From sequence record NC_048668.1: a DNA stretch of 64,000 nt; one strand, written 5' to 3'. The position numbers and the translations under genes were made by a program. Shown here piece after piece: positions 30,507 to 64,000 of the stretch. Position 1 is the stretch's first letter. Each line of letters opens with the position of its first letter. The notes beneath the pieces are model-generated. The model was not told the DNA's origin. It saw only the letters and a list, made by a program, of their open reading frames with translations, and did no database searches.

Positions 30507-30535
30507 ATTAATTACTCTTAGGAGTGTCTCTGACA

Positions 30536-33895: not shown

Positions 33896-33919
33896 TAATG
33901 TAATTGAACTGTAATGAAT

Positions 33920-45122: not shown

Positions 45123-47339
45123 ATGGCTAACTCAAGCTTAGGCAATCGTATTTCGGAACTCCCACGTTCTACGAGATCGATCAACGATGCCGACTTAACC
45201 CCGATTTCTCAAATCAAAACCAACAATCCGGAAACCGTAGCGGCAACCGTCGGTGACATTCGTGCCACCTTGGATTTTGATAATGCTTATAATTCCATCC
45301 CAGAAGGCCTGGCAGGGACTTTCCCTGAAGAGCGCTTCTATGTTTACACCGATAACTCAAAACGCTTTGTAAACGGCTACATCAACAAAAACGGCGTATC
45401 TGAAGTTATCCTCGACAAATCAGGTCAACCTCGTCGCTGGGCTACCCCGCTCTATATGCTCGCTATCGGTGAGCAATCTATCACAGTAGCTTCTGTTGAC
45501 CAGATGCGTATCATGGCTCCGCAAGTTGACGGCCAAGTCGTACGTATGCGTAACTTCCGCCAGGGTAACGTTCAGTACAAAAACGGTGGCGATTGGGTTT
45601 ACGACGCTAACGACAAAACCACCAAAGACGACGGCGTGATGTGTGTTGTTACCAACACCGGCGAACGTTTCAAGCGTGACATCTCTAGCGGCTCTATCGA
45701 AACCGATTGGTTCTTCGACCCGGTAATGGATATCGCAGACTATAGTCTGACGCTGAACAAAGCCGCTGAGTGGGTGGAAGTAAAAGGTACTGAGTGGTGG
45801 CAGACCTGGTTACCAAGCACCCCAGCTTACATTACCATGGTAGGTCCTGGCGGTGTTCGTACCTGTAAGAAACCAGTATGGCTCCGTATGTGGGCCGTGA
45901 GCTGGGACTTCCGTGGTACTTTGCTGGACTTCACTGGAGGTGCTGTCGGTCAGACCAACGTCTCCGTAGTCTACGGTCACCGTAACTCTACACTGAGCAA
46001 CCTGCGCATGTTATCCAGCGTAGCGTTGAAGCAGAAGGGTATCAACGTCTCAACGACTTCCGGTAACATTCACGGTCTGTCCGCAGCGTTCCTGAACTTC
46101 AACAACATCTCAATCAACCGTCACGACATTGCTTGGGATCTGGGCGATAACTGCTACCTGAACAACTGGTTCCAGTGCACCACTCAAGGCTGCCGTCTGC
46201 CAATCAACGCACCTAAGTCTGCAAACGCCGGGGAAACTCTGGTATGGACTAAGTGTATCTTCGGTGACGGCATTGGCCCTTACCTGAACACAGGTATGTC
46301 GATGACCTTCCACGGTTGCTCGTTCGACTACTCCGGTTACAAAACCGAAGCTGACCAATTGGCTAATGCTGAGAAAGAAGGATTATTCAATATCGATAAC
46401 TGTACGGTTCTGATGTATGGTTGCGGTAACGAATATGGTAACTTGAACAGCCGGTGGTCAGGTCCAGTATGGAGAGGTACGGGTATTATCAAGCTCTACG
46501 AATGTCAGTGGATCTTGACTACTTCAAGTACAGTCGAACCTAACGAAACGACACCGCACTTGGTACACAACTACTACTTCGAAGATACTTCTGCCGACCT
46601 GTCGTCCAAGGTCTATCTGGAAGGGTTCTACGTCCCTAACCCTGACTTGAACCGATTCTCCGGTAGTTGGACTAATGGCTGCTTCATCAAAGTCACTGAG
46701 TCTTATCCAGGTCGTTATAAGGACATGTGGCGTAACTACACGCTAGGTAAGGGAGCTAACATGTTAATCTCCCCTAACCCTAACAACGTTGGTTACTTGA
46801 CCATCAACCGTCCTCGTTGCTCTGGCGGTACTGTGGTTTCTCCTACTGAGACTTCTCTGTTCAAAGTGACTACTAACGGCAACAAGTTAGTGATCACTAG
46901 TTCAGATACTACCAAGGCACCCAAGACCTTCAGTTTCTACACTAAGGGTAAAGCGGGTAACTGGTACGGTTCTCAGTTGACCGTTAACGGTAACCGTGAC
47001 ATGACCGATGTACGTATTGCAACTAACTGCTTCGGTGTAGTGGGTTACGTAGCTCAGGACAACAGCATCACCTCGTTGGGCGAGCAACGTCAAACTTGGA
47101 ACGCCGGTCTTCAGGGTATTAAGACCACGCCTCAGACTACTCCAGGTATGCGCATGACGCAGTTGGGTACGAGTGAATACCTGCCACTTTGTCCTCCGGG
47201 TACCGAGTGGGTTCGTGTCTCTATCGAGATGACTAACTTTGGCATTGCAGCCGGTGAAGCTCCAGCGGTATTGGAAATCACCGACTTCTACGCTTGTGAA
47301 GTTGGCGTCTGTCGTGACACCAACCACCGCGTTTGGTAA
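45123..47339 (+). CDS. Tailspike/putative capsule depolymerase 1
   Basis: RISELP anchor, GG.W..D....DDG tailspike N-module, beta-helix-like Asn/Gly/Cys ladder. Confidence 0.85.
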   Translation: MANSSLGNRISELPRSTRSINDADLTPISQIKTNNPETVAATVGDIRATLDFDNAYNSIPEGLAGTFPEERFYVYTDNSKRFVNGYINKNGVSEVILDKSGQPRRWATPLYMLAIGEQSITVASVDQMRIMAPQVDGQVVRMRNFRQGNVQYKNGGDWVYDANDKTTKDDGVMCVVTNTGERFKRDISSGSIETDWFFDPVMDIADYSLTLNKAAEWVEVKGTEWWQTWLPSTPAYITMVGPGGVRTCKKPVWLRMWAVSWDFRGTLLDFTGGAVGQTNVSVVYGHRNSTLSNLRMLSSVALKQKGINVSTTSGNIHGLSAAFLNFNNISINRHDIAWDLGDNCYLNNWFQCTTQGCRLPINAPKSANAGETLVWTKCIFGDGIGPYLNTGMSMTFHGCSFDYSGYKTEADQLANAEKEGLFNIDNCTVLMYGCGNEYGNLNSRWSGPVWRGTGIIKLYECQWILTTSSTVEPNETTPHLVHNYYFEDTSADLSSKVYLEGFYVPNPDLNRFSGSWTNGCFIKVTESYPGRYKDMWRNYTLGKGANMLISPNPNNVGYLTINRPRCSGGTVVSPTETSLFKVTTNGNKLVITSSDTTKAPKTFSFYTKGKAGNWYGSQLTVNGNRDMTDVRIATNCFGVVGYVAQDNSITSLGEQRQTWNAGLQGIKTTPQTTPGMRMTQLGTSEYLPLCPPGTEWVRVSIEMTNFGIAAGEAPAVLEITDFYACEVGVCRDTNHRVW

Positions 47340-47341
47340 AA

Positions 47342-47372
47342 CAGAGGAGAGGGCTTCGGCCCTCTCCTTATA
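47342..47372 (+). terminator. Terminator
   Basis: GGAGAGGGC-TTCG-GCCCTCTCC-TT. Confidence 0.8.
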
Positions 47373-47415
47373 TCGTTTCCTATGAAATCTAAACAGACTT
47401 TGTAAGGTAAATAAA

Positions 47416-49681
47416 ATGGTTGATCAGGTTAAAATATCTGAGCTCGGTAAGGCTACTGTTGTACGGGAAAGTGATGTTATTCCTTTAAACAACACCACGA
47501 CCAGAGGTCTTCCTATTACTAAAGGAGCCAGTGTTGACAACTTAAGAAGTTGTTTCAATTTTGAACACGCCTTCTCAAGTGTAGACGAAGGTATTTCCAA
47601 TACCAATTCTGATGAAGTATTCTACGTTTTTACTGACTCCAATAAAGTGATGGTCGGTAAATATATTAATAGTAATGGCCATGCCTCTATAGTAGTCGGC
47701 GAAGACGGTAAACAGGTAACTTACCCAACTGTTAAAGCTAGCGCTAGTATGTCTAGTATTTTTGAAGCTGACGGGTATAAGGATTTAGGTAAGGTTCAGT
47801 ACATTGCCGATTTAGTAAATATTGAGCCAAGTAACGATAAACAAAGTATCATTGTAGAACGTTCAGTAGAAGGCGGCCCTGCTCTCAATTTAATCTACAC
47901 TTACGATAGTAGATTCCAACAAGGGAATATAGACGGAGTTCTGCGAGTAACCTCCGCCAAAGGTAAAGTTTGGGTTTTAGATATCTCAAACGGTTTGAAT
48001 GTCTTTGCGTTCGGATTTGTACCAGAGGCGAACAACTTGGCGCAAACGATCAATAAAGGCGTTAAATCCCTCGTAGACATGGCTATAACTAATAAAGCGA
48101 CTTACGGCACATGCTCTCATTTACTGGTACCTGGCGTCAATCCTGCAACCGGCTTAGCCAAGTACGTAATGACCGAGACAATTAAACTCCCTAGCTTCAT
48201 TGGCTTGAGGTTTACTTGTTCGACTCTCCTCGATTATTCAGGTAATGACATTGACGGGATTACGGTCAATAATACCATGTTCCCTAATGCTACAGATGCC
48301 AACCTTATTAGTTGGTACAATACTCAATCGAATGGCGTCACTGTCATTGAATGTCCAGGTAAGGTCATCGTAAAAGGAGTTGGGTCGGATACCTCTACCG
48401 CACACGGAGTTTGGGTGGGTAATACTGTAAAAGGGTTTATCAACTGCCCGTGACGTATTAGTTTCAGATGTAACTATTATCGGATTCAAATACGGCCTAC
48501 GTCATGATGGGGTGGATAGTTACCTGAACTCTTTCCGTAGGGTAGTCTGTGCCAGGAATTTTAACTCGGTTTACTTTAAAGGTACCGGAACTGGTAACGC
48601 CGGAGAAAAAATTTCATTCTTCGAATGTCTATTCAGCGACACCTCTTCATCCAACATTGTCCTTGATATTTTTGCGTTTGAGTTAACCTTCGATAATTGT
48701 AGTTTTGACTATCAGAAAGGCGATGTATTCTTCTTAGGTAAGAGTACAACTCACGGATGGGTTAAAATTACCAATTCCCATATCGAAGGATTCGATGGTT
48801 ATCTTATCAACCAACCGGATAAGTGGACGGGTACCGGACAGAAGTTCTACTTCGTCAATACCCAGGTTTGGGGCGTATACGCCACAATTCCATATAGTCC
48901 ACCACGTAAACTCTTCGACGCAGAATTGGGAGCATTCTACGTTAGCTTCCAGGATTCCCCGGTAAACTTCCGGAATAAGGGTACTAAGGACTACGGGACA
49001 TTAACTGGATTTGGTAAAACGAATGACAGTAGTTCAGTTACTGGCCAGTTCACTGTGAATAGCTCCAGAACCGATCCATGTTACTTGATAAGCTATAACC
49101 TTGCTGATAACCGTAGGTATCGTTTTACCGGTACAGAAGGCGTAGTATTACCTAACCCGGAACCTAGCACTGGGATTTCCTACATTACCCGCAACGGTGC
49201 AGTAGAAGTCACCTATGGCAAAATTGGGGCAGACGGGCTTCAGAGCGTTGTTATCAACTCTAGTGATGTCGGTGCTGAGGTAGACTTTGTCTTCCCTGAA
49301 AGGGTCCCGGTCGGTCCACGAGATACCTTTAATAGCATGATATCAGTTAAGCAAGGTAGTGCGACTGGTGATGTGAAAGTGTTCGGTATTGCGCGCTGCT
49401 TTACAGACCCAACTATGACAGGTAAGAAGAACGCTGCTGACGATAACGTAGTGATCACCACTAACTATCCAGTACTAGGTACAACCGCCGATCGTAACTT
49501 CCTCCTTTCAGAAGCACTAGGTGAAGTAGGTACTAACGTGACCCGTAACGATTTCGTCGCAACCCCTCCATTAACATCAACGTTATGGAACGCTGTTAAG
49601 AGCGCCAGTATTGGTCTTCGTATTACTGGCTTCACCGGTTCAATCGAGATCAAACTACCAGTGTACTGGAAGGTAAAATAA
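47416..49681 (+). CDS. Tailspike/putative depolymerase 2 (joined across a +1 frameshift at about 48447-48449)
   Basis: VKISEL anchor. Removing one C gives FINCRDVLVSDVTIIGFKYGLRHDGVDSY and joins ORF 48512-49681. GNAGEKISFFECLF beta-helix turn. Confidence 0.85.
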
Positions 49682-49722
49682 TTTTATCAGGGGGCTTCGG
49701 CCCCAATAACGAGGCTGAGAGA

Positions 49723-51855
49723 ATGCCAGTATCACCGACGAAATATACTAAGATCTCCGACTTACCTAAAAAGGAAGTTATGGAGAACGATCAGTTTATC
49801 ATTAATACCAACGACACTAAGCTGGATCAAACGAGCGTAGCTTCTCTCTACGATATTCGTGAGGGCGTCTACTTCAGTAACGCAGCTAACACTATCACCG
49901 AAGGTCTGGCCTCCGTGGACGATGACGAGATGTTCTTTGTCTACGACACTGCAGCTAAGTTCTCTGTCCTTCAGTACATGAAGGTTCGTAACCAGGCATC
50001 ACCTGTCATTGGTTCCGATGGCAAACAACGCCGTTTCCCTACTTATCTTTCCATGTTGAATGTAACTGCTATCTCGGAAACGTCCGGTTACGACATCATC
50101 GGTAAGGTTGACAATTTCGCCGCTCTACGTTCTATCAAACCTACCTACACAGGTCAGCGCGTTATCCTGGCTGGGTATTTCTCTGGTAGCTCTTTGGGAT
50201 CCGGGGAATTTGTGGGGTACGCAGGGACAGCTAACGATGATGGCGGTACTACTGCCTCAGGTGATGGCTTTTATTGGAAGCGGAACAAGACTGCCTTTAC
50301 GCTCGAAGATTTCGGTGGCGGTCAAGTAGACGATACTGAAGCAATGCGTGCATCTCAGAAAGCACAAGTAGGTCCTATTACCCTCTCCCCAGGTAAAACC
50401 TATTATTACTCATCCCCGGTAAAACATTATTCTAAAGCCGGCTGGATTGGTAACGGTGCTTCTATCGTATTCAGAGGGACAGGTAACCGAATTCCGTTTA
50501 TCTCTTCTCCGACTACAGCCGCTGGCGTTGATAACGACCGCGCAAACGGAAGTACTGCCGTAACTGGAGCTATCTTTAAAGACCTGACTATTGACGTCAA
50601 CTATGTCGATACTACGGGTGCATTAGGCTTTGAGTTTGGCGAGAACACGTTAGACAACTGGACGAATTGCGTCTTTACTAACGTGACATTCAAGAACGGT
50701 AAGTTCGATAACTTGGGGCTGCAGAATAACTCCACCGATAACCAGTTTATCCGCTGTACTTTCATTAACGCAGGTGAAGACTCGGTTACTGTACGCGGCG
50801 GTTGTCTCCGTAATGAGTTTGTTGAATGTGATGTTGTCAATAGCGCCCAGGTAGCTCACCGAGACGGAACCTTCTACGGAGACGGTATCGTCAACAAAGG
50901 TCGTGATACCTTGATCAAAAGCTGTCGCTTCATCAATATCGGTAATGGTAAGAAAGGCGCGGGTATTGCGAATAACGCTGAAGATACCAAGAACGCTGAC
51001 GAAGCTAGTAACGGTACTTACCTCAACAACTATTTCATTAACTGTTATGGCGGTTTTGGTTTCGGTACGGTTAACCCAGACTTCATCGCAGCAGGTGATT
51101 TGATTAAAGGTATCAAGGCTATCGGAAACGTATTTGTAAATACGCTTCGCACCGTGATAGGTATTCGTGATCTTTACCAACCGGTTCTGTTGGATAACGT
51201 TATCCTTACCCAGACCACCGGTAACGTAACCACGATTGAGATTACCAACTGCACCAACTTCCAAATGACCGGTCGTGTTACAGATGCCGCTGGCTCCGCT
51301 ATTACGATTACGTCTTCCTCGGGTAAAGTTGATTTGGTGGCGGATAATGTCTCCACGACCAAGACACTCAACGGGGTGGTTATTACCGACAGTAATCGGA
51401 TTACGGGCAGTATCCGTTTGATCAATGCTCAACGCCGCGGCTGTACTTTCTCTAACTGTAACAACATGGACTTAGACCTCTACGTTGAGTCGCCTGCACA
51501 GGACGCGCTGGAAGCAGTTGGCTGTCGTTACTCTAACTTAGATGTTAAGTTGGTGAACGTCCCTGAACACGGTATGACATTGAACGGCGTTGTTGAAAGT
51601 AATATCAAGTTCAACATCAATGATGCGGGAGTTAAAACTCCATCTGCATTTTATCCGATCCGGTTACTGGGTGTACGTAACAGTATCCTCAGCGGAGTAT
51701 CGTCTTCGGCTAATGCGAATAAACCACTTTACGATATTACATCCGATGCTAATAACGTAAACGTATTAATCGCCAATAGTCGTCTTGGAGCGGGTACTAC
51801 GGGTAAAGTACAGGTTGGTCAAGGGTCTACTATTACCCAGAACAATATCATCTAG
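49723..51855 (+). CDS. Tailspike/putative depolymerase 3
   Basis: KISDLP anchor, GSGEF...DDGG module, EDFGGGQVDDT pectate-lyase-3-like start, beta-helix repeats. Confidence 0.87.
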   Translation: MPVSPTKYTKISDLPKKEVMENDQFIINTNDTKLDQTSVASLYDIREGVYFSNAANTITEGLASVDDDEMFFVYDTAAKFSVLQYMKVRNQASPVIGSDGKQRRFPTYLSMLNVTAISETSGYDIIGKVDNFAALRSIKPTYTGQRVILAGYFSGSSLGSGEFVGYAGTANDDGGTTASGDGFYWKRNKTAFTLEDFGGGQVDDTEAMRASQKAQVGPITLSPGKTYYYSSPVKHYSKAGWIGNGASIVFRGTGNRIPFISSPTTAAGVDNDRANGSTAVTGAIFKDLTIDVNYVDTTGALGFEFGENTLDNWTNCVFTNVTFKNGKFDNLGLQNNSTDNQFIRCTFINAGEDSVTVRGGCLRNEFVECDVVNSAQVAHRDGTFYGDGIVNKGRDTLIKSCRFINIGNGKKGAGIANNAEDTKNADEASNGTYLNNYFINCYGGFGFGTVNPDFIAAGDLIKGIKAIGNVFVNTLRTVIGIRDLYQPVLLDNVILTQTTGNVTTIEITNCTNFQMTGRVTDAAGSAITITSSSGKVDLVADNVSTTKTLNGVVITDSNRITGSIRLINAQRRGCTFSNCNNMDLDLYVESPAQDALEAVGCRYSNLDVKLVNVPEHGMTLNGVVESNIKFNINDAGVKTPSAFYPIRLLGVRNSILSGVSSSANANKPLYDITSDANNVNVLIANSRLGAGTTGKVQVGQGSTITQNNII

Positions 51856-51930
51856 TCATACGGCCAGGGGTTTCCCTGGCCTATGTTTGTTCATATGACA
51901 GTTTCCTAAAACAATCAGGATAAGTATACA

Positions 51931-53943
51931 ATGGCCGATAAATCACCAGTTAAAATATCTCAGTTACCCGAGCCTACCGGGACTGGGATTAACGATAGCG
52001 ACATCTTCGCGGCATCCCGTATAACGGGAGCAGATAAGTTAGAGACTCAACGTATCACTGTCAGCGAATTGCGTAAGCTGATGGATTACGGTAATGCATT
52101 CTCTGACTTGAACGCAGCTATTGCAGCAACCGTTAAAGATCAACAGTTTTACGTATTCGTTGATGACTCGAAAGAGTTCGTTTACCGTTACGTGAACATG
52201 GGCGGAATTGCTTCCCCAGTTCTCGATATGTCAGGTAATCCGCTCAGGGAACCAACCAAAGAACTTGTTAAACATCTTGAACAAATACGTTCTAGTGTCG
52301 GTTTCGGATTGATTGGCCAGATTAAATCATTCGATGAGCTACGGGCAACAGAGCCTACCTTCCCTGGTCAGCGTGTATTACTCAGCGGATATCGAGATGG
52401 CGCTAACTACGGCGGAGGGGAATTCTTCCACGACGTAGCTGACAAAAATACAGCCGACAATTCAGGTACAGTGGCAGTTACCCCAGGAGGGGCGCGCTGG
52501 AAACGGGTTATCGTTGACACATCTACTAACCATGCCGAGTGGTGGGGTGTACATTACTCTCAGGCAGATAACGCAGTTGCGTTAAAGAAGGCAGCAGACG
52601 CATCACGCAAAAAGATACTTATGCTTCCACAAGGTAGTAACGCTAACCCGATCGTAATTCGTAGCCCTATCGTATTCCAGACTAACTGCGGGATTAAACT
52701 GCGCGGCTGCGGTGTCAAAGACTCCACGACCATCTCTGTTCAAATCGGCCCTGGTTATGAAACCTACGGAGCCCTTCACTTCCCTGGCCGTAACCCTACC
52801 ACCAATGCGATGGAAGCCGGTTTCGCTGGGATTGAAATTAGTAACGTTCAGTTGTTGGGTAACTTGAGTACCTGTCGTGGCATTTATCTTCAGTACCAAT
52901 ATCAGTCTCTGTTCAGTTACGTTAACGTAGAGCGCTTCAACGGTGCCGGTCTTTATCTTGATAAGAGCCAAGATAGCGATTTCAACTTCTTTAACGTTTG
53001 GGATTGTGGTCGTACTAACGGGGATCGTACATCTAACGTTGATACGTTCGACATGACGAAAACAGCGGAGTCTCCGATCGTAGCAGTTAGTACCATTACT
53101 AACGACTTCTGTAACTATCTCCGTTTCAACGACTGTCAGTTCGAAGATAACCACGTATGCCCGGTTATGGACCTTAACTGGGGTATTGAGAACTACATCA
53201 ACAACTGTCACGTTGAGTTTAACGCTAACTGGAACATCACGGGAGCACCCACCCCATACTTCCTTAAGATGCAACAGGGCGTAACTAAAATCAACGGAGG
53301 CGGTATTGCCGAGTATCAGGGCATTCAGCATAATTACGGTGAACTCTATCTCCGTGATGTTCGATGTTCCCCAGGTATCGTTTACACCATGCTTAACGAT
53401 GTAACGAGCCGTGCAGAATTCCACGGGATCAGTTTCTATTCAATCCCTGGGTTGGCACGTAAACGATTCACTAAGTTTGAGTATTGTAACTTCTCCCAAC
53501 CAGTTACATTAGCGTACCCTAACTCGGATATCTGGTTTGATAAATGTACGTTCGTGGGAGATTTCACTACTACCCATGCTGGTGCAGATCTCCGTATGAC
53601 AATCAGAGGTTGTTACTTCAATGCTAACGTAACTATCGCAGACGATACGACTAACGTATTCATGGACGGGTGTTATATCGCAGGTGATGCCAACTATGGT
53701 TCAGGCGGCGGGATGTGGGGTAACAACAAAGTACTCGGTACGTTTACTCAAACGAGTAATGGTGTTCGCTGGGTAACTCCTACGTTCAAGCAAGTGGTAG
53801 GTACAAGTGCCCCAACGACCGGATCCTTCAGAGTCGGTGATTTGTGCTGGAATACTGCACCTACTGCCGGAGGCGTCACTCACTGGCGTTGTGTCACGGC
53901 AGGTAGTCCTGGTACCTGGCGCGCAGTCTCAATTGTTTCCTAA
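51931..53943 (+). CDS. Tailspike/putative depolymerase 4
   Basis: VKISQLP anchor, GGGEF module, beta-helix, C-terminal APTTGSFRVGD..W..P.AGG..W.C...G.PGTW motif. Confidence 0.87.
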   Translation: MADKSPVKISQLPEPTGTGINDSDIFAASRITGADKLETQRITVSELRKLMDYGNAFSDLNAAIAATVKDQQFYVFVDDSKEFVYRYVNMGGIASPVLDMSGNPLREPTKELVKHLEQIRSSVGFGLIGQIKSFDELRATEPTFPGQRVLLSGYRDGANYGGGEFFHDVADKNTADNSGTVAVTPGGARWKRVIVDTSTNHAEWWGVHYSQADNAVALKKAADASRKKILMLPQGSNANPIVIRSPIVFQTNCGIKLRGCGVKDSTTISVQIGPGYETYGALHFPGRNPTTNAMEAGFAGIEISNVQLLGNLSTCRGIYLQYQYQSLFSYVNVERFNGAGLYLDKSQDSDFNFFNVWDCGRTNGDRTSNVDTFDMTKTAESPIVAVSTITNDFCNYLRFNDCQFEDNHVCPVMDLNWGIENYINNCHVEFNANWNITGAPTPYFLKMQQGVTKINGGGIAEYQGIQHNYGELYLRDVRCSPGIVYTMLNDVTSRAEFHGISFYSIPGLARKRFTKFEYCNFSQPVTLAYPNSDIWFDKCTFVGDFTTTHAGADLRMTIRGCYFNANVTIADDTTNVFMDGCYIAGDANYGSGGGMWGNNKVLGTFTQTSNGVRWVTPTFKQVVGTSAPTTGSFRVGDLCWNTAPTAGGVTHWRCVTAGSPGTWRAVSIVS

Positions 53944-53947
53944 AACC

Positions 53948-53976
53948 AGAGGAGGGGAAACCCTCCTCTTTTATTT
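53948..53976 (+). terminator. Terminator
   Basis: AGAGGAGGG-GAAA-CCCTCCTCT-TTTATTTT. Confidence 0.85.
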
Positions 53977-54020
53977 TGGGTTCCTATGAATATTTACACA
54001 ATACCATGAGGCTCACGTCC

Positions 54021-57000
54021 ATGTCAGATAACGATTTACAATTGCGCATTACCGAGTTGCCGAAGTTAGACCACTTCGATTCCAACTCTGTTCTCCCTGC
54101 GGTAGGGCGTAGTCAAGGCACTAAGATGACAGGTAAAGTTAACTTCCGTGAAATGCGGAGTTACTTCGATTTGTCAAACGCCTACGAAACCATTAAGGAC
54201 GGTGTCGATGCCACTAAGTTAGGCGATACGTTCTTCGTCTACTCTGATGGCACCAAAGTATTCGCCAACGAATACCAGAACATCGGTGGCGCTGCCACTC
54301 CAATCCAAGATCCCAAAGAAGGGGTCATCTATTACCCAACGCGTATGGGTATTGTAGGTAGTCTGGCTGCCGGTGCTACCGTAGGTAGCTTTGATGAACT
54401 CCGTAACACTCGCCCGTTAAAAGAGGGTGTTAGCATTTATCTCAGTAGCTATTATAAAGGCCTTAATAAAGGTGGCGGTGAGTTTATTGGCTATTACGGT
54501 AAACGCGCCGACGATGGCGGCATGGTAGCCGGTGACGGGAATAACTACTACTGGGTACGTAACGCTAACTTCGTCACTCCGGAAATGTTTGGTGCTTACG
54601 GTACTCCAGATAAAGATGACTCAGCTGCTATAGAAGGGGCACTGAACTCAGGATTAGATGTTCAGTTCGACGGTAGCGCTACTTATATCGCAAACCGTAC
54701 CCTTGTCCTGAAGTCAATCAAGTGGCAACAATTCATTGACGGTAACGGAGCATGGATCAAGTATAGCGATAAATCCCGTGGTTTGATTAACGAGATTGAC
54801 GCCAATGGTGTTACCCAGCGTTACACGAAGTTCCGTAGCTTCTTCAACTTGAATCTCCAGGGTCCTGCTACCAAGAACTCTAAGTGGAACGACGTTAACC
54901 AGTGCGATGCTCTGTGCATTAGTTACGGTGTAGTTGAGAACTGTAACTTCTACGGATGGTCTAACGCCCTGCGTGGTTTCGGTGAAGCCTACGTAAACAA
55001 CTGCTTCGGTGACGACCTTCGTACAGCAATGTTCTCCTGCTACGATCCAGGGCATAACGAAATCACTAACAGTTCGGTTGGTTGGTGTTCTGGTGACGCT
55101 ATCATCCTTAAAGGTGGTTCAGGTAAAGCTCACAACGTCGATATCGTCTACGCAGGCTGTATTGACAAAAACAACGAAGACGGCGCTACGGCTCTCCCAG
55201 GTTGTATCGTGTCATGTGGCGCAGATGGTGCCGGATCTCAAAACATCCAGATCTCCAACATCAGTTGCCAGTACTTCGGTTGTGCTGGTCTGAACATCCA
55301 GGGTGACGGCGTAACGGTTTCCGGTGACATGAACCTGGGGTCTATCTACGAAGATAACTTCCAGTACGCTAACCAAGCAGCTGCCTTGTGGATTGGCGCT
55401 AAGAACTTCACCATCGGTAACTTGCACTTTAACAAAGTACACGTCGGTGTAGGGATCAACGGTAACTGCGCGAATGGTTCGATTGGTAAGATTCGGATCA
55501 TGAGCAAAACCAACCTGGCAGGATCTACTCTGTTCTCGGCAACAGATGGCCCTAACTCCCAGATCACCAAAGTTATCGTGGACGCAATTGACTTCCTCGG
55601 CGCCTCTACGATTAACAACGACGTTTACATCAACACCGATGGCCTGTATCTGAAATCGTTCTATATCCAGTCCTTGAACAACCTTCAAGGCGGTTATACG
55701 GTTGCTCTGCGTAAGAACGCCCGTATCGGTAAAATGATTCTGGCAGCAACGACTTCAGCAAGTACGAGTCCGGTAATGCTCATCGAGAGCGATTCTGTCA
55801 TCGATGAACTGGAGTTCCGTCGTAACTTCGGTACTGCATTGGTGGTTGAGAATAATGCTCGCCCGGCGATCAAGCGTCTTTCCTTCCAGTACAAACAAGG
55901 TATTGCTGCACCGTTCATTATTAAAGGTGACGGTACCATGACCTTGAACTGGGGTGACGTCGATATGTTCGGTCCGAGTGTGGCTCGTCCTCAGATCGCT
56001 GGTAAGCTCGTAATGAACTCTTACCAAGGCCCTACGTTCCGTCCGTTTGATGCAGCCGTATATGCAGGCGTTTCTGTACCTAATCGCGTGTTCCAGGGTA
56101 TAGAAGAAATGCGTATGGTAGGTCCGTCCAAAGAAGGTGACACCGCTTACCTTTCTGGTTATTACCTTAACAGTACCAGTACATTAGGTAGCGGTACTTT
56201 CATCGGACACATTGGCGCTGCTCCTGTGGCAGACGACAAAGGTTGTTTGATCGTAGGTAACGGTTACTGGTGGGAACGTATCGTGGCTGGCCCTCTAGAT
56301 GTATTCATGTTCGGGGCTAAAGGCGACTTTAACGTAACCACCCAATCTGGTACGGATGACTCGGATTCATTCATCAGCACTATTGCCGCTGCCATTCGTT
56401 TAAACTACCGTGACGTATTGGTCCCTGCCGGTTACAACTACTACCTGACTAAAACCATCAACCCAGGTGGTGTAGGTTATCGCGGTAATAAAGGCGTTGC
56501 TATCCGCGGCGGGTCTACCGCCAACACGAATATCTTCTTCAACCCAGCTACCAATGGAACTGCATGTTTTGAGATTCTCGGTGGTTCAGGTATTCACTCA
56601 GGACGCGAAGTTTCTGGTTTTACGATTCAGCCCGTTAACAGTAAACTTTACACTGGTGTTGGTATTCGTTACGCCGGCTGTTGCTTCGTAAGGCCTGCTA
56701 ACTTCAATATCATCATGAAGTTCGATATAGCACTTCACTTACTGAACGACCAAGGCCCAGGGGTATTTACCGAATACAACAACTTCTTTAACTGGCGTCT
56801 GCACCGTTCACACGTTGATGTCCTGTTCGAAGTTAACGGTGGCGATAACTCGTTCCACGGTAACAGCTTCTACGAAAGTCAGATTCAGGTTAAAACGAAT
56901 CAGAACTTGGGTGACGGTAACACCGACGTAGGTATCGGTATTGAGTTAAGGGGCGTAACCGCACCAGCATACTGGTACGATGCTAAGGTATTTGTTGATA

Positions 57001-58064
57001 TCTTCGGCGGCCCAGGTGCTATCGGGATGAAACTTACCCGTGCTAACACTGACCACTTGATCGGAGGTATCAATGGCGAAGGTGATTTGATCTTCCAGAG
57101 CACCGATACCTCTGCTTTCGAGTTGGCGGGTGATCTGCGCAGTATTGGTAAGGTAACCTGGGATGTGGCCGCCGAACCAACCACGGGTCGAGCTGCTGTC
57201 TACATCTTCAATAACCGAATCAGTAACGAATCCAACTTCACCTCCCCACGGATGAATGGACTTAGTCCGAGACTTTTGAATCCTTCTCTGGCCGATAGAA
57301 CGGACAACGGGTCAGTTCCTGCTATATTCCGTGCAACTAAGTTAGACTATGACAGTATCTGTAACGCGGTGATTGGGTTGGCAAATAACCGCCACCTTTG
57401 GGGTTATATTCCACCTAACGGTAACCTGCAGAGTTTCGTACCTGGCGCAGCGCTATCGTTCGATGGCACCTCGTTTACTAGCTACAGTGATTCGTTTATT
57501 ATCGGGACCCAGAACAGAACCTTCTCCATTAATGGCACTGCTCTGTTCCCGTCTACTACAGGTAGCTTAACCCTTGGTCAGTCTCAATATCGCTGGAGTA
57601 GTATCTACCTCAATAACTTCGACATTGATTCAAATGGGATTAACCCGGTAGTAACTAATGCGATGTCAATTGGTAGTACGAGTAAGATCTTCAAGGATAT
57701 CTATCTCCAAAATGCTCCAACTGTTGTTTCCGATGAAAAGGATAAGGATGAAGTTTCCGAAATCCCTCCTGAGGTTATTGCTGCATGGGGTAAAATAAAC
57801 TTCTCTCAATGGAAAATGAAAACGGCCATTGACGAGAAGGGAGAGAAAGCCAGATTGCACGTTGGTGTAATCGCGCAAGATATACAGAAGGCTTTCCAGG
57901 AAGCTAATTTGGATGCCACGGATTACGGTATCTTAATTATCGAGAAAGACGAAGACGAGAACGAACAATGGATGGTTCGCATGGATGAGTGCCTTGTACT
58001 AGAGGCCGCTTACCAGCGTAGTCGTTTGGATGAGATTGAGAAATTACTTAAAGGTAAGAAATAG
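54021..58064 (+). CDS. Tailspike 5 with two tandem beta-helix modules and a C-terminal Peptidase S74 intramolecular chaperone
   Basis: RITELP anchor; the adaptor plus FGAxGD module occurs twice; VSDEKDK...HVGVIAQD...R.DE chaperone motifs. Likely start is ATG at 54021; the track start is 53976. Confidence 0.88.
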   Translation: MSDNDLQLRITELPKLDHFDSNSVLPAVGRSQGTKMTGKVNFREMRSYFDLSNAYETIKDGVDATKLGDTFFVYSDGTKVFANEYQNIGGAATPIQDPKEGVIYYPTRMGIVGSLAAGATVGSFDELRNTRPLKEGVSIYLSSYYKGLNKGGGEFIGYYGKRADDGGMVAGDGNNYYWVRNANFVTPEMFGAYGTPDKDDSAAIEGALNSGLDVQFDGSATYIANRTLVLKSIKWQQFIDGNGAWIKYSDKSRGLINEIDANGVTQRYTKFRSFFNLNLQGPATKNSKWNDVNQCDALCISYGVVENCNFYGWSNALRGFGEAYVNNCFGDDLRTAMFSCYDPGHNEITNSSVGWCSGDAIILKGGSGKAHNVDIVYAGCIDKNNEDGATALPGCIVSCGADGAGSQNIQISNISCQYFGCAGLNIQGDGVTVSGDMNLGSIYEDNFQYANQAAALWIGAKNFTIGNLHFNKVHVGVGINGNCANGSIGKIRIMSKTNLAGSTLFSATDGPNSQITKVIVDAIDFLGASTINNDVYINTDGLYLKSFYIQSLNNLQGGYTVALRKNARIGKMILAATTSASTSPVMLIESDSVIDELEFRRNFGTALVVENNARPAIKRLSFQYKQGIAAPFIIKGDGTMTLNWGDVDMFGPSVARPQIAGKLVMNSYQGPTFRPFDAAVYAGVSVPNRVFQGIEEMRMVGPSKEGDTAYLSGYYLNSTSTLGSGTFIGHIGAAPVADDKGCLIVGNGYWWERIVAGPLDVFMFGAKGDFNVTTQSGTDDSDSFISTIAAAIRLNYRDVLVPAGYNYYLTKTINPGGVGYRGNKGVAIRGGSTANTNIFFNPATNGTACFEILGGSGIHSGREVSGFTIQPVNSKLYTGVGIRYAGCCFVRPANFNIIMKFDIALHLLNDQGPGVFTEYNNFFNWRLHRSHVDVLFEVNGGDNSFHGNSFYESQIQVKTNQNLGDGNTDVGIGIELRGVTAPAYWYDAKVFVDIFGGPGAIGMKLTRANTDHLIGGINGEGDLIFQSTDTSAFELAGDLRSIGKVTWDVAAEPTTGRAAVYIFNNRISNESNFTSPRMNGLSPRLLNPSLADRTDNGSVPAIFRATKLDYDSICNAVIGLANNRHLWGYIPPNGNLQSFVPGAALSFDGTSFTSYSDSFIIGTQNRTFSINGTALFPSTTGSLTLGQSQYRWSSIYLNNFDIDSNGINPVVTNAMSIGSTSKIFKDIYLQNAPTVVSDEKDKDEVSEIPPEVIAAWGKINFSQWKMKTAIDEKGEKARLHVGVIAQDIQKAFQEANLDATDYGILIIEKDEDENEQWMVRMDECLVLEAAYQRSRLDEIEKLLKGKK

Positions 58065-58139
58065 ACATAGCGCGGAGGGGAAACCCTCCGCCTATTTTGT
58101 TCCTATGAAACATTACTCTCTTATACTAGGTGCAAACCC

Positions 58140-60335
58140 ATGGCCGATAATTTCAGCGGTATTAAGATTAGTCAGTTAGACGATCCTAATCGTATTAACG
58201 ACAACGATATCATCCCGTTCACTAACGATGACATGGGCGATAAACAAACACGTAAAATAAAGTTAAGTGCCCTACGTGATCAGCTCAATTACGATAACGC
58301 TTTCCTAACCGTGCAGGAAGGTTTAGCCAACACTATCCCAGGACAGATCTTCCACGTATACGTTGACGACACTCAGTTAGAAGTCTACGCGTACCTTAAC
58401 AGTAATGGTGCAGCAGAGATCGTCCAAGATGCGCAGGGTAATCCTTTTAAAGGACAAACCGCCAAAGCGCTGGACTTCATTCGTGGTGAGTTAGGACTTA
58501 CCATGATCGGTCACGTAAGTTCCTTTGCACGACTGCGCGAAATCAAACCTCCTTTCGAAGGTGCTATTGTAGAACTTCTGGGTTGGAACGAGGGCTCCAC
58601 TTACGGCGGTGGTCGTTTCCAAGGCAATCTGTCTACGGGAGCTGACGACAACGGTATTGTTGCGGCAGGCGACGGTTTCCAATGGCGTCGCATTAATGTC
58701 GACGAAGGCATTAACCCAGAGTGGTTCGGTTACGTGAATGGTTCAGGTAATGACGTATCCACTACGTTGAAACAAGCCATTGCTCAGGCGGTTAACCTGA
58801 AACGTCCTGTTGTATTCCGCGATGGGGCTCAAATGAGTCTAGCGGTAGCAGGGATTGAAATTCCAGTAGGCGTTGATCTTACTGTGGCTAACGGTGGGAG
58901 AGCTTACTTTGAAATCACTCACGAAATCGAAACAACCGGACAGTTCCTTGTCAAAAGTAAAAACCGAATCTCCGGACTTGTCTTCAACTACCCGAAACAA
59001 ACGAAAGACATCAATGCTAAGCCGATTGTGCGTTACGGACCTATTTTTGTCGGTGCTGGATTTTATTCTTCTTTCACGGGAATAAACGTAGGTAACGCAT
59101 ACTACGGATTTAAGATCGGCGGTAATGACGAAGGCTCCGCATCGTACATCACGATGAAAGACATTAACGGCGCCCCTATCTATCGTGGAATTTCACTTGA
59201 CCGCGTTCTGGACATCCCTCGTATTTCTGATATCCATTGGAACTACAACATGTACCTGAACTCCGATCAGGACTACGCACCATCTCTGAAACAGTGGATC
59301 CATGAGAATGGTGAGGCGTTCCATTTTGGTCGTGTTGACTTTGCTGAGGTACAACGTATCTTTGCATTCGGGTACAGTAAAGGTATCTTCCTGAGAGGTG
59401 AGCGTTATGCGGGGAGCGCTGATTCCATTCGCTTCACGGGTTGCGATATGGACATCTGTGTTAACCCTATCTACGCTCAGAACTTTAGTGGTCAGTTAGT
59501 TATTCGTAACGGTAAGTTCACGGGTAACGGTAATAACCTGAATGGGTTGACTGCGCCGGCTAACGGTTGTTTCAACTACTTCCAACGCGTGTCTCCGTAT
59601 GCACGAGTCATCTTGGATTCAGTTACCATGAACAACTACGACCGCGATGCTATTCGTACGGGTAACGACACGGTCATCAGTAACAGTAAGATCTACTCTT
59701 ACGGCTTGGACAAACAGCAACGTGCAGCAGTAGCTATCATTACCGATAGCAATGCGTCGTTGACTGTAGATGCTTGTTACTTCGATGCTACTGGTCAACA
59801 GAACCGCGGCATTACAGGTATCAGTACTACCGGTCAGTTGTTAATCACTAACGGTACTCAAATCCTTAACGCTTCGTTAGAAGGGTATCGTTGGTTAACC
59901 GGTTTTGCGCTAGTTGAAGAAGGTTGTCGTATCGATGGTCCATCTCGTAACATCAACACGTTCATCACCAATGTCCGTCGCACTATGTACACGGATAATC
60001 TCCCTACCGCAGGCGGTGGATGGATTCGCGGCGATAAAGCGATGTTGACTAACCCCGGTATCGGTACCCAGGCAACCCAGGGCACCTACACTATCCTGGG
60101 CTGGATACGCATCACTGCCTCTAATGCCGAAGGTACCAACCACGTATTAGGTGTTGACTGGTTAGAGATCAGATCTCAAATTGAACCTGTCCCTAAGTTC
60201 AGTTCAGCAGGTAGCGTACGACCAGCGGTAACTGCCATTGGCTATTACTTCTTCGACACCACATTAGGTAAACCAATTTATCTCAAATCTGCTAACCCAG
60301 CTGTTTGGGTTGATGGCAACGGTAACCCTGTTTAA
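58140..60335 (+). CDS. Tailspike/putative depolymerase 6
   Basis: IKISQL anchor, GGGRF module, PEWFG, beta-helix, C-terminal RP....GY.FFDTTLGKPI...W.DGNG motif. Confidence 0.87.
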   Translation: MADNFSGIKISQLDDPNRINDNDIIPFTNDDMGDKQTRKIKLSALRDQLNYDNAFLTVQEGLANTIPGQIFHVYVDDTQLEVYAYLNSNGAAEIVQDAQGNPFKGQTAKALDFIRGELGLTMIGHVSSFARLREIKPPFEGAIVELLGWNEGSTYGGGRFQGNLSTGADDNGIVAAGDGFQWRRINVDEGINPEWFGYVNGSGNDVSTTLKQAIAQAVNLKRPVVFRDGAQMSLAVAGIEIPVGVDLTVANGGRAYFEITHEIETTGQFLVKSKNRISGLVFNYPKQTKDINAKPIVRYGPIFVGAGFYSSFTGINVGNAYYGFKIGGNDEGSASYITMKDINGAPIYRGISLDRVLDIPRISDIHWNYNMYLNSDQDYAPSLKQWIHENGEAFHFGRVDFAEVQRIFAFGYSKGIFLRGERYAGSADSIRFTGCDMDICVNPIYAQNFSGQLVIRNGKFTGNGNNLNGLTAPANGCFNYFQRVSPYARVILDSVTMNNYDRDAIRTGNDTVISNSKIYSYGLDKQQRAAVAIITDSNASLTVDACYFDATGQQNRGITGISTTGQLLITNGTQILNASLEGYRWLTGFALVEEGCRIDGPSRNINTFITNVRRTMYTDNLPTAGGGWIRGDKAMLTNPGIGTQATQGTYTILGWIRITASNAEGTNHVLGVDWLEIRSQIEPVPKFSSAGSVRPAVTAIGYYFFDTTLGKPIYLKSANPAVWVDGNGNPV

Positions 60336-60347
60336 TAAGGTATTAAA

Positions 60348-62538
60348 ATGAGCGATTACAGCGCTAAGATTACGGAACTACCTGGTGGTTCTAAAGTAAG
60401 GGAAAGTAGCCTACTGCCATTGGCAACGGCTAAGACAGCAGGTGGAATAACTGAGAAGTTTACCGTAGCGCAGCTTCGTAAGGGACTGAACTACGAGAAC
60501 GCGTACAATACCTTAGCCCGAAGCTATTCCTGATACGGTACAAGGCGAGGTGTTCTTCGTATTCACTGGGCCAGACAAAACTGCGGTAGCTGAGTACCTT
60601 CGTGGCGCCAGCGGTGCAGGGCAGGTGTTGGATGAGGCAGGGACTCCTGTAGTCCACCTGACTCCAAAAGGTATGGCATCTTATCGTGTCATTCCTAACA
60701 TGGCTACACTGCGTACCACTAAGCCAAAGAACCCTAACGAAATTGTTGAGGTCACCGAGTATTACACCGGTAAAATGAATGGCGGTGGTCGCTTTGTATC
60801 TGCGGTTAATACGACCGTACCTGACGACGGTGGTTACACTACGATTCGCGTTGATGATAATACCGTGTGGTATCGCCAGGATCTACGTGCTTTGACTCTG
60901 TGGGATGGTGGTTGCGATAACTCGGTAGCGGATAACGGCCCGTTCATCCAGAACATCCAATACTCTCGTTCTTTGCAACCGATCAAGGTGCCGAGTCAGT
61001 ACTTCGGTATCCGTACGCCAATCGTAATCAAAGCTAACAAAGGGTTTGCTTTGTACGCAGATGGTGCCCATACTGGTCGTGCTGTACTGCAATGGATGGG
61101 TGGTGACTTTAATGACGATACCACTGCAGTTCTGAGCATTACTGTAGACAATCCTACTGACTTCACTTACTCGGGTGTAGTTCTGAAGGGATTCTCTATC
61201 TTGGGTGGCGGTAAAGTCCTACACGGCCTCTACATGCGTAACGTAGGTTACCCTGAGATCGATAGCCTTAAGATCGAGAACTTCAAAGGGGCCGGTCTTC
61301 TGCTCGACCAAGTTCAGGACGGTTACTTCAACTTCCTGGAAGTTCAAATCTGTGGTCGTACCTCAGGGGACTACGGCGTTTACGCTGACTTGGTCAACTT
61401 GAGCAAGACGCAATTCGCACCGATCCACATCATCTCCAGTAAGTCAGGCGATGCATCTAACATGCTGCGTTTCCAAGGCGGTCAGTGGGAAGCTAACAAC
61501 TGTTCCCCTACTGTCTACTATCGTGGTGGTATTGGCCTGTGGATCTCCAAGATTCACTGCGAGCAGCGTAACGGCCCGATGAGTAAGTTTAAACTCTACG
61601 ATCCTAACTTTGTCATGGACACCAGTCCTGAGAAAGCGGGTCGTGTGTTTATCCAAGTAGATGGCTCCAGTTCGTCCGAAGTCATGCTGGATCAGATGCA
61701 GTCTTCTGAAACCGAACGTTTCGTTTACGCCGGTGGTTACGGTGTGGTCATGATCACGAACACAACGCGAGGGGGCGGTATTTGTTTAGCCTCTGCCAAC
61801 CGTGAGTTTGCCATGACTATCACCAATAGCTGGTTGACCGACTGCTACTTTAGCTCGTCTTCTCGGGTATGGATCGACAACTGCCGTCTTGGTAACCTGA
61901 CCTGGTCTTACCCGTCTTATACTGGACTGATTTCCAACACCATGATGAAAGACGTCGTCATGAACAACGATGGCTCTTTCCCGGATATCAACTTCAACAA
62001 CTGTATCTTCGATAACTTCACTAACTACGTGAAGAACGTTCGTGTTACCGGCGGACACTGTAAAGGTAACTTCTCCTTCAACGCCTCTGGCGGTGGCGGC
62101 GCAGTAATCGGTACAGTTATTGATGGTACGTTGAGCGTTGATACCAAATGGGGTATTGACTTCCGTCCATCTGGCGCAGTGATGAACCAGGTTTACTCAA
62201 ATAACGCCCCTGCGGAACAAGCGCCTAACGGCACTCGTCCAAACGGTTCTATCTGGGTTAACAAGAACGTGGTTGCCAACGCACCTGACGGCACTCCTAT
62301 CTCTTGGGTTAAAGATGCCGCCGGTAAATGGGTTCCGTTTGCATTCGTTGGTACCTTAGCTAACGGCGTGGTGGCGAAAGAATATACGTTCGCTAACTTA
62401 CCAGGGGCATCTTTGGCTAAGCGTGCGATTGTTACCTGTACGGATACAGCGAAAACGCCTAAAGACCAACTGATCTATTCCGATGGGACTAACTGGCGTT
62501 ACGTGTCCGATCCTGCCACTGTAGTAACTAAAGGCTAA
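60348..62538 (+). CDS. Tailspike/putative depolymerase 7 (joined across a +1 frameshift at about 60517-60519)
   Basis: KITELP anchor. Removing one C gives NTLAEAIPDTVQGEVFFVF and joins ORF 60550-62538. Confidence 0.85.
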
Positions 62539-62626
62539 TATAGACACCCTTGGCAGTACTAACGCTGCCAAGGGGTTTATGTCGTGTTTCTATGAGATTT
62601 CGAGCGTAATCAAAAGGTCCAGTATA

Positions 62627-64000
62627 ATGAACAACAATCAAACTAAAATCAGCGAGTTGCCTAAAGGTGCAAAACTCAAAGAGTCCAGTTTATTACCTGT
62701 TGTCAGTAAGCTCAGACACCGCAATTGAAACAGAACGCTTTACTCTATCTGATTTCAGAAGCTGGGCTAACTACGACAATGCTTACTCAACTTTGGCTGA
62801 CGGCATTAAAGACACTGAAGTGGGTAATACTTTCCTTGTTTACACCAGCGATAACAAATACTCCGTAGCAGAATACGTACGTCTCCCATCTGGAGCGAGT
62901 CAGGTTATTGATGGTGAAGGCAATGCAATTTTTCATTTAACAGCTAAGGGTAGAATCCCCGTTAAGACAATAGCTGCATTACGTAATCGTGTCCCTACGT
63001 TAGAGGGCGAGCCGGTCTACGTTATTAGTTACGACGAAACTGTAACTACAGGCGGCGGTTGGTTCATCGCCAAGAAAGGGACTGTAGTCGACGATGGCGG
63101 TCACCTTATTTCCGTTAATGGATCATGGTATTGGGAACGATCTGCTAACGAGGTTAACCTATTAGACTACGGAATTAAAATCTCTTCTCGTGAAGCCGGG
63201 AAAGAAGTTTATTACGACGTCACGGATAAACTGCAGGCTGCGACTAAACGAGCCGGTGACAAAGGCTGTCCGTTAGTTTCCAGTGCTACGTTCCAGAACG
63301 ACCCAGGCAACGACGGTTATCCGCGTTGGGGTTATTTCATCACCAAAACGTGGGATATCACCGGACTTAAATATCTGAACGGTCAGTTTAACATCCTGGT
63401 TCGGGGCAATACATTTGCTACCACCGGGACAGTGCCAATGGGCGGAACTACTCCATACTGCATCACTGCACTTAACTGTAAGTGGGGTACGGACGGTAAG
63501 TTCTTCGGTACAACGTACGGTAACCTTGTCATCGATAAGTTGAATCTGTTCAACATGGACGGATATAACCCTAACGTTGCTCTTAACGGTATCTTGATGA
63601 TTGCATCGGGTTCTCGTTTTAACTTCATGATGGCAACTAACTTCAACGGCCGTGCTATCCATTTCGCCGACTCTTACGATAACGTAATGGGTGACATTCG
63701 AGTAATGTGGTCTGGGAACCAAAGCGCCTTTGCATTAGAAGTTGGTGCATGGAAAGCTGACAGTACGTCTAGTCGCGATGAATCTAACGCCAATACATTC
63801 TTGGCAGTAATGGCGCATAACTGCCGTGAGAAGTCGTGGTTGATTGCTGGTAGTAAAACCAACGTTGTCCGTATTCACGACGAGGCAATCTTGTCCACTA
63901 CGGCAACTCCGAGTAATCCTATCCGGGATTGAGTCACGAAATGGTTACGGGTATACCTCGTGCTACTTCTCTTCAATCGGCGGTCACTTAGGCGATGTCA
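62627..64000 (+). CDS. Tailspike/putative depolymerase 8, runs off the window (+1 frameshifts at about 62708 and 63925)
   Basis: ATG at 62627 gives MNNNQTKISELPKGAKLKESSLLPVVS, joining ORF 62667. After the GGG at 63925-63927 it continues IESRNGYGYTSCYFSSIGG. Confidence 0.83.

Follow-up and report, generated by a model that had tools for sequence, protein, structure and literature searches.

Tailspike genes with a common N-terminal anchor in Serratia phage vB_SmaM_2050HW and their counterparts in Klebsiella phage phiKp24

How might a single phage particle carry many different tailspikes, and what do these spikes have in common that would allow them to be mounted together? This question is raised by positions 45123-64000 of the 64,000-nucleotide stretch of DNA analysed here (the window). 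The window corresponds to NC_048668.1:62001-126000 of Serratia phage vB_SmaM_2050HW (MF285618), hereafter 2050HW, and 45123-64000 matches at 100%. This part is filled by nine long open reading frames (ORFs), all on one strand. When the N-termini of these ORFs are aligned, a common region of approximately 110 amino acids (the anchor) appears, followed by a second common module (the head). The remainder of each protein (the body) is mostly unrelated to the others. The region appears to be the main receptor-binding arsenal of the phage, a virion-borne set of spikes with multiple specificities, in which docking of the anchor-bearing spikes in parallel is favoured. The probability of this reading is estimated at roughly 0.75. 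It is carried by the homology of the modules, the distribution of the anchor family, the synteny with phiKp24 and the swapping of bodies, all of which were observed.

2050HW is a Moabitevirus with a 276-kb genome and is a phiKZ-like jumbo phage. The genome encodes multi-subunit RNA polymerases, a PhuZ tubulin and a 2213-amino-acid tail protein with a transglycosylase domain. The array is 99.6% identical in the Pectobacterium phage ParM-25, 95-99% identical in Kodama, Moabite, Haymo, BUCT660 and Yaphecito, and 76% identical in Totoro. ParM-25 (ON375847.1) is 99.6-99.8% identical to 2050HW across the whole window. It was isolated from cabbage on Pectobacterium aroidearum and 2050HW was isolated on Serratia marcescens; these host genera belong to different families. 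The occurrence of a near-identical array in a Pectobacterium isolate is in keeping with a broad reach, as judged from the isolation metadata only.

The array and its common anchor

A first-pass annotation, made from the nucleotide sequence, had proposed at least eight genes that begin with one anchor of about 110 amino acids. A profile built from six of the anchors confirmed eight such genes in the window, the first starting at 45123. Exactly these eight were matched by the profile, and nothing else in the 64 kb was. The array begins exactly at 45123 and extends past the end of the window by about 5 kb. Whole in the record are gp115, gp118, gp119, gp120 and gp121, plus the part of gene 2 that carries the anchor. 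The genes, together with the one that precedes them, are as follows.

44451-45017, plus strand: gp114, a stand-alone DUF7941 protein (PF25613) of 188 amino acids, with a Pfam expect (E) value of 2.5e-11; PHROG 2935, "virion structural protein"
45123-47339, plus strand: gene 1, gp115, 738 amino acids, with anchor, head domain and body
47416-49681, plus strand: gene 2, gp116 and gp117, with one frameshift in the record; 754 amino acids where intact, in ParM-25 and Totoro
49723-51855, plus strand: gene 3, gp118, 710 amino acids, with anchor, head and body
51931-53943, plus strand: gene 4, gp119, 670 amino acids, with the anchor at residues 1-115 (51931-52275) and the head at residues 129-193 (52315-52509)
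54021-58064, plus strand: gene 5, gp120, 1347 amino acids, a double-bodied spike
58140-60335, plus strand: gene 6, gp121, 731 amino acids, with anchor, head and body
60348-62538, plus strand: gene 7, gp122 and gp123, with one frameshift in the record; 729 amino acids where intact, in ParM-25 and Moabite
62627-64000, plus strand: gene 8, an unannotated N-terminal piece with gp124 and gp125, continuing 1,130 bases beyond the window

The whole 276-kb genome was scanned piecewise, and the anchor was confined to the array and one second locus at 179-184 kb. This locus (NC_048668.1 179344-183665, designated L008) lies outside the window, 55 kb off. It holds two anchor genes, gp232 (688 amino acids) and gp231/230, the latter with one split in the 2050HW record and intact at 725 amino acids in Moabite. 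Moabite has no gp232 at this position. Eight array genes and two at the second locus are present, and therefore there are ten anchor-bearing genes in the genome. Directly 3' of the array, gp126 possesses the head module and no anchor, its start corresponding to the neck helix of gp115. Farther downstream, gp136 and gp137 encode spikes headed by DUF7941, a different N-terminal domain. In a Pfam search, gp114, gp136 and gp137 matched DUF7941 and the array proteins did not. The ten anchor-bearing proteins, gp126 and gp136/gp137 bring the candidate receptor-binding proteins in 2050HW to 13.

The similarity among the N-termini is strong and sharply bounded. In BLASTP comparisons of the paralogues, E values of 1e-12 to 1e-37 were obtained, and with the exception of two pairs the similarity is restricted to the first 150-220 residues. 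The N-termini match PHROG 27731 with E values of 1e-20 to 1e-37, and gene 7 matches it with an E value of 3.9e-246. The six genes from which the anchor profile was built score 1e-42 to 1e-48 against it, which is circular; the proteins of phiKp24 score 1e-19 to 1e-32. Conservation was assessed in 113 family members, with gp119 numbering. The most conserved columns are K8 (91%), I9 (81%), S10 (86%), L12 (92%), R48 (94%), A56 (89%), T67 (91%), F73 (96%), V75 (93%), V84 (91%) and T109 (76%). The motifs that had been noticed by eye in the first-pass annotation are all present, and they are these same columns, conserved in 76-96% of the 113 members.

The family is narrowly distributed. The anchor was found in 23 of 50,697 phage records, which belong only to Moabitevirus and to the phiKp24-like Klebsiella jumbo phages. 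A search with the gp119 anchor located 5-8 places per genome in Moabiteviruses and 4-7 in phiKp24-like phages, the latter at 34-38% identity. Among 1.84 billion representative proteins, 134 clusters belong to the family, with a typical length of 570-1350 amino acids. The match begins within the first 12 residues in 128 of 133 family members. Two metagenomic contigs (L006 and L007) each possess 4-5 anchor genes beside a DUF7941 gene and a prohead protease gene. The anchor is a compact attachment domain with sharp boundaries. All main spikes in two genera of jumbo phages possess it, and its presence can serve as a simple rule for detecting such spikes in metagenomes.

No structural precedent for the anchor was detected. 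A profile of the anchor by itself gave no relevant match in the PDB (best E value 1.2), and the structures of DpK2, Depo32 and WceF were not matched. An AlphaFold model was made of residues 1-120 of gp119 from 113 sequences (mean predicted local distance difference test score 84.5; predicted template modelling score 0.67). It places, in order, 20 loosely predicted residues, a beta-hairpin, two short helices, a small sheet and the neck helix. Foldseek found no match to this model in the PDB (best E value 0.18, template modelling score 0.22). In BFVD, only members of the same family reached an E value of 1e-3 or better, and the N-termini of other spikes gave weak, partial matches at about 1e-2. 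The stretch K-I-S-E-L (residues 8-12) is the best conserved of the anchor, yet it is modelled with low confidence. We infer that this pattern is what may be expected of an interface peptide that becomes ordered only upon binding.

Two further matches to the anchor were considered. An alignment of gp118 to 7lzj from residue 52 had suggested that half of the anchor might be common to DpK2. This was dropped because the anchor-only profile does not support it. In addition, four proteins (P0121, P0126, P0130 and P0134) match portions of the anchor profile partially, 3-12 times in tandem. These proteins look unrelated, and nothing informative was found for them in Pfam. The repeated matches may be due to chance or to a common small repeat.

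Heads, bodies and their exchange

The first-pass annotation had also described a tailspike module with the pattern GG.F...DDG behind the anchor. This module is real, and it equals the head domain of solved tailspikes (7lzj, 7vyv, 6tgf and 5w6p), with E values down to 1e-18. It spans approximately 65-90 amino acids and equals the neck/connection domain of those structures. DpK2 (7lzj) and Depo32 (7vyv/7vz3) are matched with an E value of 1e-18 and Pantoea WceF (6tgf) with 1e-16; TSP2 and TSP4 of phage CBA120 (5w6p, 5w6h) and K2-type spikes are matched also. In the terms used for Depo32, the module is the neck helix plus the connection domain (PMC10581125), and in those of CBA120 it is the D1 head (PMC10253068). 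The precomputed listing of PF27114 includes gp115, gp118, gp119, gp120, gp121, gp123, gp124 and gp126. In all eight array genes the gap between anchor and head is 3-14 amino acids, and no docking region is inserted. DpK2, Depo32 and WceF therefore resemble the array proteins in the neck helix and connection domain (E values of 1e-18 to 1e-16). They differ in the N-terminal anchors, which are not resolved in their structures and are missed by the anchor-only profile.

The match to bacterial WceF raises the question of whether these are virion proteins at all. They could be soluble exopolysaccharide-modifying enzymes of the AmsF/WceF type that are freed at lysis, and several records do annotate them as "amylovoran/exopolysaccharide biosynthesis protein". 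However, the WceF match is limited to the head domain, and WceF itself is tailspike-like. A conserved N-terminal domain in ten paralogues would have no obvious use in a free enzyme, and the genes are placed among virion structural genes. Free enzymes are thus a highly improbable explanation, and the reading as virion-borne spikes is retained.

The bodies were expected to be mostly unrelated to one another, and BLASTP comparisons bore this out, with two exceptions. The bodies of gp119 and gp123 are 28% identical over 361 amino acids, and those of gp115 and gp126 are 24% identical over 480 amino acids. The largest protein of the array, gp120, carries two bodies, with the following modules on the plus strand.

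54021-54359, plus strand: anchor
54378-54563, plus strand: head, first copy
54618-56090, plus strand: body A
56097-56282, plus strand: head, second copy
56295-57938, plus strand: body B
57729-57908, plus strand: Peptidase_S74 chaperone

Along its entire length, body A (residues 200-690) matches tail spikes of one Klebsiella podophage, one Stenotrophomonas jumbo phage and the Serratia phages phiMAM1, 2050H1, 3M, Tsm2 and Kevin. For body B, a match to the solved depolymerase of Klebsiella phage Kp7 (7y5s) was obtained with an E value of 7e-44. The C-terminal Peptidase_S74 chaperone (Pfam E value 3.9e-12) was found in no other array protein and is optional in the family.

The other bodies have a range of relatives. 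Outside Moabitevirus, the gp115 body was found in a single Stenotrophomonas jumbo phage, and the gp119 body is nearly restricted to Moabitevirus. For gp118, the entire body aligns at 41% identity with a protein that occurs in Serratia phages phiMAM1, 3M and 2050H1; 2050H1 and 2050HW were isolated on the same strain, wk2050. The body of gp121 shares 41% identity with an Acinetobacter phage ABPH49 protein and 33% with the tail spike of a Klebsiella phage. The gene 2 body is like many Klebsiella phage spikes and matches 7xyc weakly (E value 2.9e-4), and the gene 8 body is also like Klebsiella phage spikes, among them phiKp24 gp309. The relatives of the bodies of gp118, gp119, gp120 (body A), gp121 and genes 2 and 8 are annotated as tail spikes. 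The bodies do belong to the pool of tailspikes and depolymerases to which the first-pass annotation had assigned them, by the 7y5s match of gp120 body B and by the matches of the others to spikes of Serratia, Klebsiella and Acinetobacter phages.

Hidden Markov model searches of the bodies, which that annotation had proposed as a check, gave a mixed outcome. Pfam detected the S74 domain of gp120, and for most bodies nothing significant was returned by Pfam or NCBIfam. No body match was obtained for gp115, gp118, gp121 or gene 8 in PDB, Pfam and NCBIfam searches. The match of gp119 to the Pfam family Beta_helix is weak and below the cut-off (E value 0.0074). A beta-helix body therefore appears clear for gp120 body B and is hinted for gp119 and gene 2. 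Most bodies lack a characterised relative, and none close enough for the transfer of catalytic sites was found. The array spikes presumably degrade polysaccharide and are presumably present in the virion, with capsule or O-antigen as the probable type of receptor.

A comparison of array content across relatives was also carried out. The bodies were found to be swapped and the anchors to be position-specific. In ParM-25, Moabite and Totoro the anchors group strictly by array position, with at least 50% identity, and paralogous anchors inside one phage are 22-44% identical. Position 4 has a different head and body behind an anchor that is 92% identical. At position 2, where the anchors are 63% identical, the body has been exchanged, the replacement in Moabite having clear Beta_helix and GH28 signatures. 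Position 8 is entirely replaced between relatives. Since the anchors are kept at each position and the bodies are replaced, the receptor set can change while the attachment interface is untouched.

Fusions were found as well. In Totoro, one gene (L004, 18812-21748) joins the position-4 anchor, head and first 133 body residues to the position-7 body and possesses two head copies. In BUCT660, a protein of 1001 amino acids (P0001) combines the gene 6 front with the gene 8 body. Each of these fusions shortens the array. Phages with multiple spikes are a natural model of one virus that recognises many surface polysaccharides.

Attachment to the virion and comparison with known systems

The first-pass annotation had likened the array to the fibres of Klebsiella phage phiKp24 (vB_KpM_FBKp24, Maaswegvirus; PMC9700779, PMC8386662). 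This likeness proved to be true homology, with a common anchor (34-38% identity in phiKp24-like genomes) and syntenic loci. In phiKp24 the homologous anchor is present on eight proteins, at 35-44% identity. These are gp301, gp306, gp307, gp308, gp309, gp310, gp312 and the product of an outlying gene of 881 amino acids. A profile search found no anchor on gp300, gp303, gp304 and gp313, and gp126 showed no similarity to phiKp24 gp313. The same head domain is present. The loci of 2050HW and phiKp24 share, in this order, the prohead protease, the 188-amino-acid DUF7941 gene, the spike array, two DUF7941-headed spikes and the dUTPase. In both phages the array thus has the same place in the genome, in phiKp24 beside a gene 70% identical to gp114. 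The spike totals are comparable, with 13 candidates in 2050HW and 14 in phiKp24. Judged by sequence, the 2050HW array is the Serratia counterpart of the phiKp24 apparatus, and it lies in an already published genome.

There are also differences. The phiKp24 bodies are almost all unlike those of 2050HW. The phiKp24 genes form two divergent arrays, whereas the Serratia phages have one co-directional array. In gp306-like proteins, an insert of 213 amino acids separates the anchor from the head, and this type of protein is absent from the Serratia phages. The insert of phiKp24 gp306 had no Pfam match.

The phiKp24 paper describes fibres that encircle the baseplate in cryo-electron tomography, without protein assignment, and a susceptibility of nine capsule types (PMC9700779). 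It proposes gp306 as the primary fibre, with docking domains like those of T4 gp10, and ranks the fibres by N-terminal length and not by a common domain (PMC9700779). Text searches of the paper gave no sign of a shared N-terminal domain (PMC9700779). The published ranking appears to overlook the common N-terminus.

In phage CBA120 (TSP1-4) and in RaK2/phiK64-1, several spikes are also present per virion, with modular exchange of bodies and a D1-type head before the body (PMC10253068, PMC7506556). The structures 5w6p and 5w6h are matched by the 2050HW head. In these systems the virion anchor is confined to a single protein, TSP4 or gp528, whose T4 gp10-like domains serve as docking sites for the other spikes (PMC10253068). 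In 2050HW, by contrast, ten proteins have a homologous anchor, for which neither sequence nor fold searches found a match among solved structures. In phiKZ, gp131, gp133, gp134 and gp135 are paralogous fibres with one N-terminal domain and differing C-terminal parts, and six such fibre N-termini bundle at each baseplate attachment site (PMC13250141). 2050HW is likewise a phiKZ-like phage having paralogous proteins with one N-terminal domain, although its anchor is a different domain. No link between DUF7941 and the gp131-type N-terminus of phiKZ was found, as DUF7941 gave no phiKZ match and no PDB match.

The array proteins could be assembled as in CBA120, with one primary fibre on the baseplate and the anchor serving as a plug into docking domains of primary or secondary fibres. 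The proposal of gp306 as primary fibre with T4 gp10-like domains (PMC9700779) is in keeping with such a hierarchy, as are the 213-amino-acid insert of gp306-like proteins and the way CBA120 and RaK2 work (PMC10253068). The two bodies and two head copies of gp120 could make it a platform. However, the proposed primary fibre gp306, the secondary fibre gp301 and the four tertiary fibres gp307-310 of phiKp24 all begin with the anchor, and therefore the anchor does not mark rank. The anchor genes of 2050HW have no insert, their gaps being 3-14 amino acids, and ten proteins bear the anchor in place of the one in CBA120 or RaK2. Since the same anchor is on all phiKp24 ranks, the insert is lacking and there are ten carriers, parallel docking is favoured over a CBA120-like hierarchy. 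The hierarchy is considered doubtful. The term "hyperbranched" may not fit 2050HW, which has anchor-bearing spikes and no gp306-type inserted docking region.

Some jumbo phages have been described as hairy. The spikes could accordingly stand elsewhere on the particle, as neck appendages or sheath hairs rather than at the baseplate. In the Moabite record, the orthologue of gp115 is named "neck protein" because HHpred matched it to the pre-neck appendage of phi29. Since that appendage is a beta-helix spike too, this match speaks for the fold and not for the place. Cryo-electron tomography of the homologous phiKp24 system shows the fibres encircling the baseplate. A neck or sheath location is very unlikely.

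Under parallel docking, the anchor, with its K-I-S-E-L peptide and small alpha/beta domain, would fix each spike to the virion. The neck helix and beta-sandwich head domain would follow as in solved tailspikes, and the exchangeable body would bind, and probably cut, surface polysaccharide. Replacement of bodies by recombination just behind the anchor or head would shift the host range. Spikes with the anchor would each occupy a separate site at or close to the baseplate, possibly via gp114, and the anchor-less spikes would ride on other spikes as true branches. gp114 always adjoins the array, and the phage records that have it are the 23 that have the anchor. Its identity in phiKp24-like phages is 70-72%, its conservation between the two genera being approximately 70% versus 35-44% for the anchors. 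It may be the best candidate adaptor. In a bolder and tentative form, a structurally new anchor would plug up to ten spikes side by side, with the position subtypes as addresses and the DUF7941 protein as socket. Most of the phiKp24 apparatus would then be flat and parallel, with branching restricted to the anchor-less spikes.

Several points weigh against the reading of the region as a virion-borne arsenal with parallel docking. The position-specific conservation of anchors could be due to vertical descent alone and not to distinct docking sites. Most bodies have no significant Pfam, NCBIfam or PDB match, and for most of them the beta-helix fold and catalysis are putative. The anchor model is a monomer prediction, and the anchor surely works as an oligomer. 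It is adjacency and co-occurrence that make gp114 a candidate. Virion location, enzyme activity, docking partner and parallel geometry are what we infer from these relationships. Finally, if the frameshifts described below are real, the 2050HW isolate carries fewer spikes. The new elements are modest: an anchor family is defined, no structural precedent for it was found, it occurs on every rank of the phiKp24 fibres, and gp120 has two bodies.

Frameshifts, gene boundaries and neighbouring genes

Genes 2, 7 and 8 are frameshifted once, once and twice, respectively, in the 2050HW record. Both frameshifts of gene 8 are counted over its full length, and the gene is intact at 833 amino acids in ParM-25. 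The breaks are frameshifts only, with no in-frame premature stops and no inserted elements. The natural intact genes of ParM-25 and Moabite were used for full-length comparisons of the broken genes. Does the record show an array that has partly decayed, with real frameshifts in genes 2, 7, 8 and gp231/230 and fewer spikes than in relatives? Exactly four length differences from ParM-25, of one base each, are present in the 21.9-kb array. All lie within genes 2, 7 and 8, and all are coding and frame-breaking, as decay would have it. However, two of the four are in homopolymer runs, and the rest of the window is equally dense, with ten more single-base length differences in 45.1 kb. The counterparts of genes 2, 7, 8 and gp231/230 are whole in every relative examined (ParM-25, Moabite and Totoro). 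Genes that should be essential are split too in the 2050HW record and whole in ParM-25, namely those for a DnaB-like helicase, an NAD ligase (three pieces) and a transglycosylase. The split genes other than spikes are located as follows.

19956-22125, minus strand: split non-spike gene in the window, 722 amino acids in ParM-25
gp036/037 and gp257-259 of NC_048668.1: split genes outside the window

Because differences are as dense elsewhere and presumed-essential genes are also split, the breaks are probably for the most part errors of the deposited sequence and not decay of the arsenal. Decay is unlikely. The 2050HW record seems to be rich in single-base errors, and its gene calls need to be checked against ParM-25 or Moabite.

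The array genes are separated by recurrent short elements.

47344-47369, plus strand: G+C-rich hairpin immediately 3' of the gene 1 stop
49684-49709, 51862-51881, 53948-53969, 58072-58091 and 62547-62574: similar hairpins
47377-47385, 51890-51898, 53981-53989 and 58100-58108, plus strand: motif TTCMTATGA, intergenic and upstream of structural genes
39569-39577, plus strand: fifth copy of TTCMTATGA, upstream of the prohead protease gene

Terminator-like sites number 23, with 16.5 expected, and the strongest ones are in intergenic gaps. TTCMTATGA was matched five times, with 0.88 expected, and all matches are intergenic and on the plus strand. Looser copies precede gp115 and gene 8. The motif may serve as a late promoter for the RNA polymerase encoded by the phage. 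A scan for sigma-70 promoters found sites below chance (15, with 25.7 expected), which is uninformative because the phage has its own RNA polymerases. With a strong hairpin ending most genes and TTCMTATGA ahead of many, each gene looks like a bounded cassette.

Other genes in the window were also explored. The gene for a beta subunit of the virion RNA polymerase is divided into two parts, 30524-33898 and 35327-36418 (both plus strand), which correspond to positions 2-1050 and 1071-1422 of PHROG 3148. Between them lies a 328-amino-acid gene (33962-34948, plus strand). In ParM-25 the corresponding gene carries the annotation HNH endonuclease, and Totoro has a larger one in this position. The arrangement may reflect the insertion of a homing endonuclease or a gene that is naturally split. 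The 2213-amino-acid ORF (22181-28822, minus strand) belongs to PHROG 3201, is annotated "tail fiber protein" and has its transglycosylase domain at residues 1824-2034. Its product is probably a giant tail lysin or a tape-measure-like protein of phiKZ-type phages and not a fibre. Between the prohead protease gene and the array are two small genes on the plus strand, 42129-42584, with a weak match below the cut-off to an NrdI-like flavodoxin, and 43469-43894, with DUF488-N3a (E value 1.6e-7). The DUF488 gene stays beside the DUF7941 gene in the metagenomic relatives.

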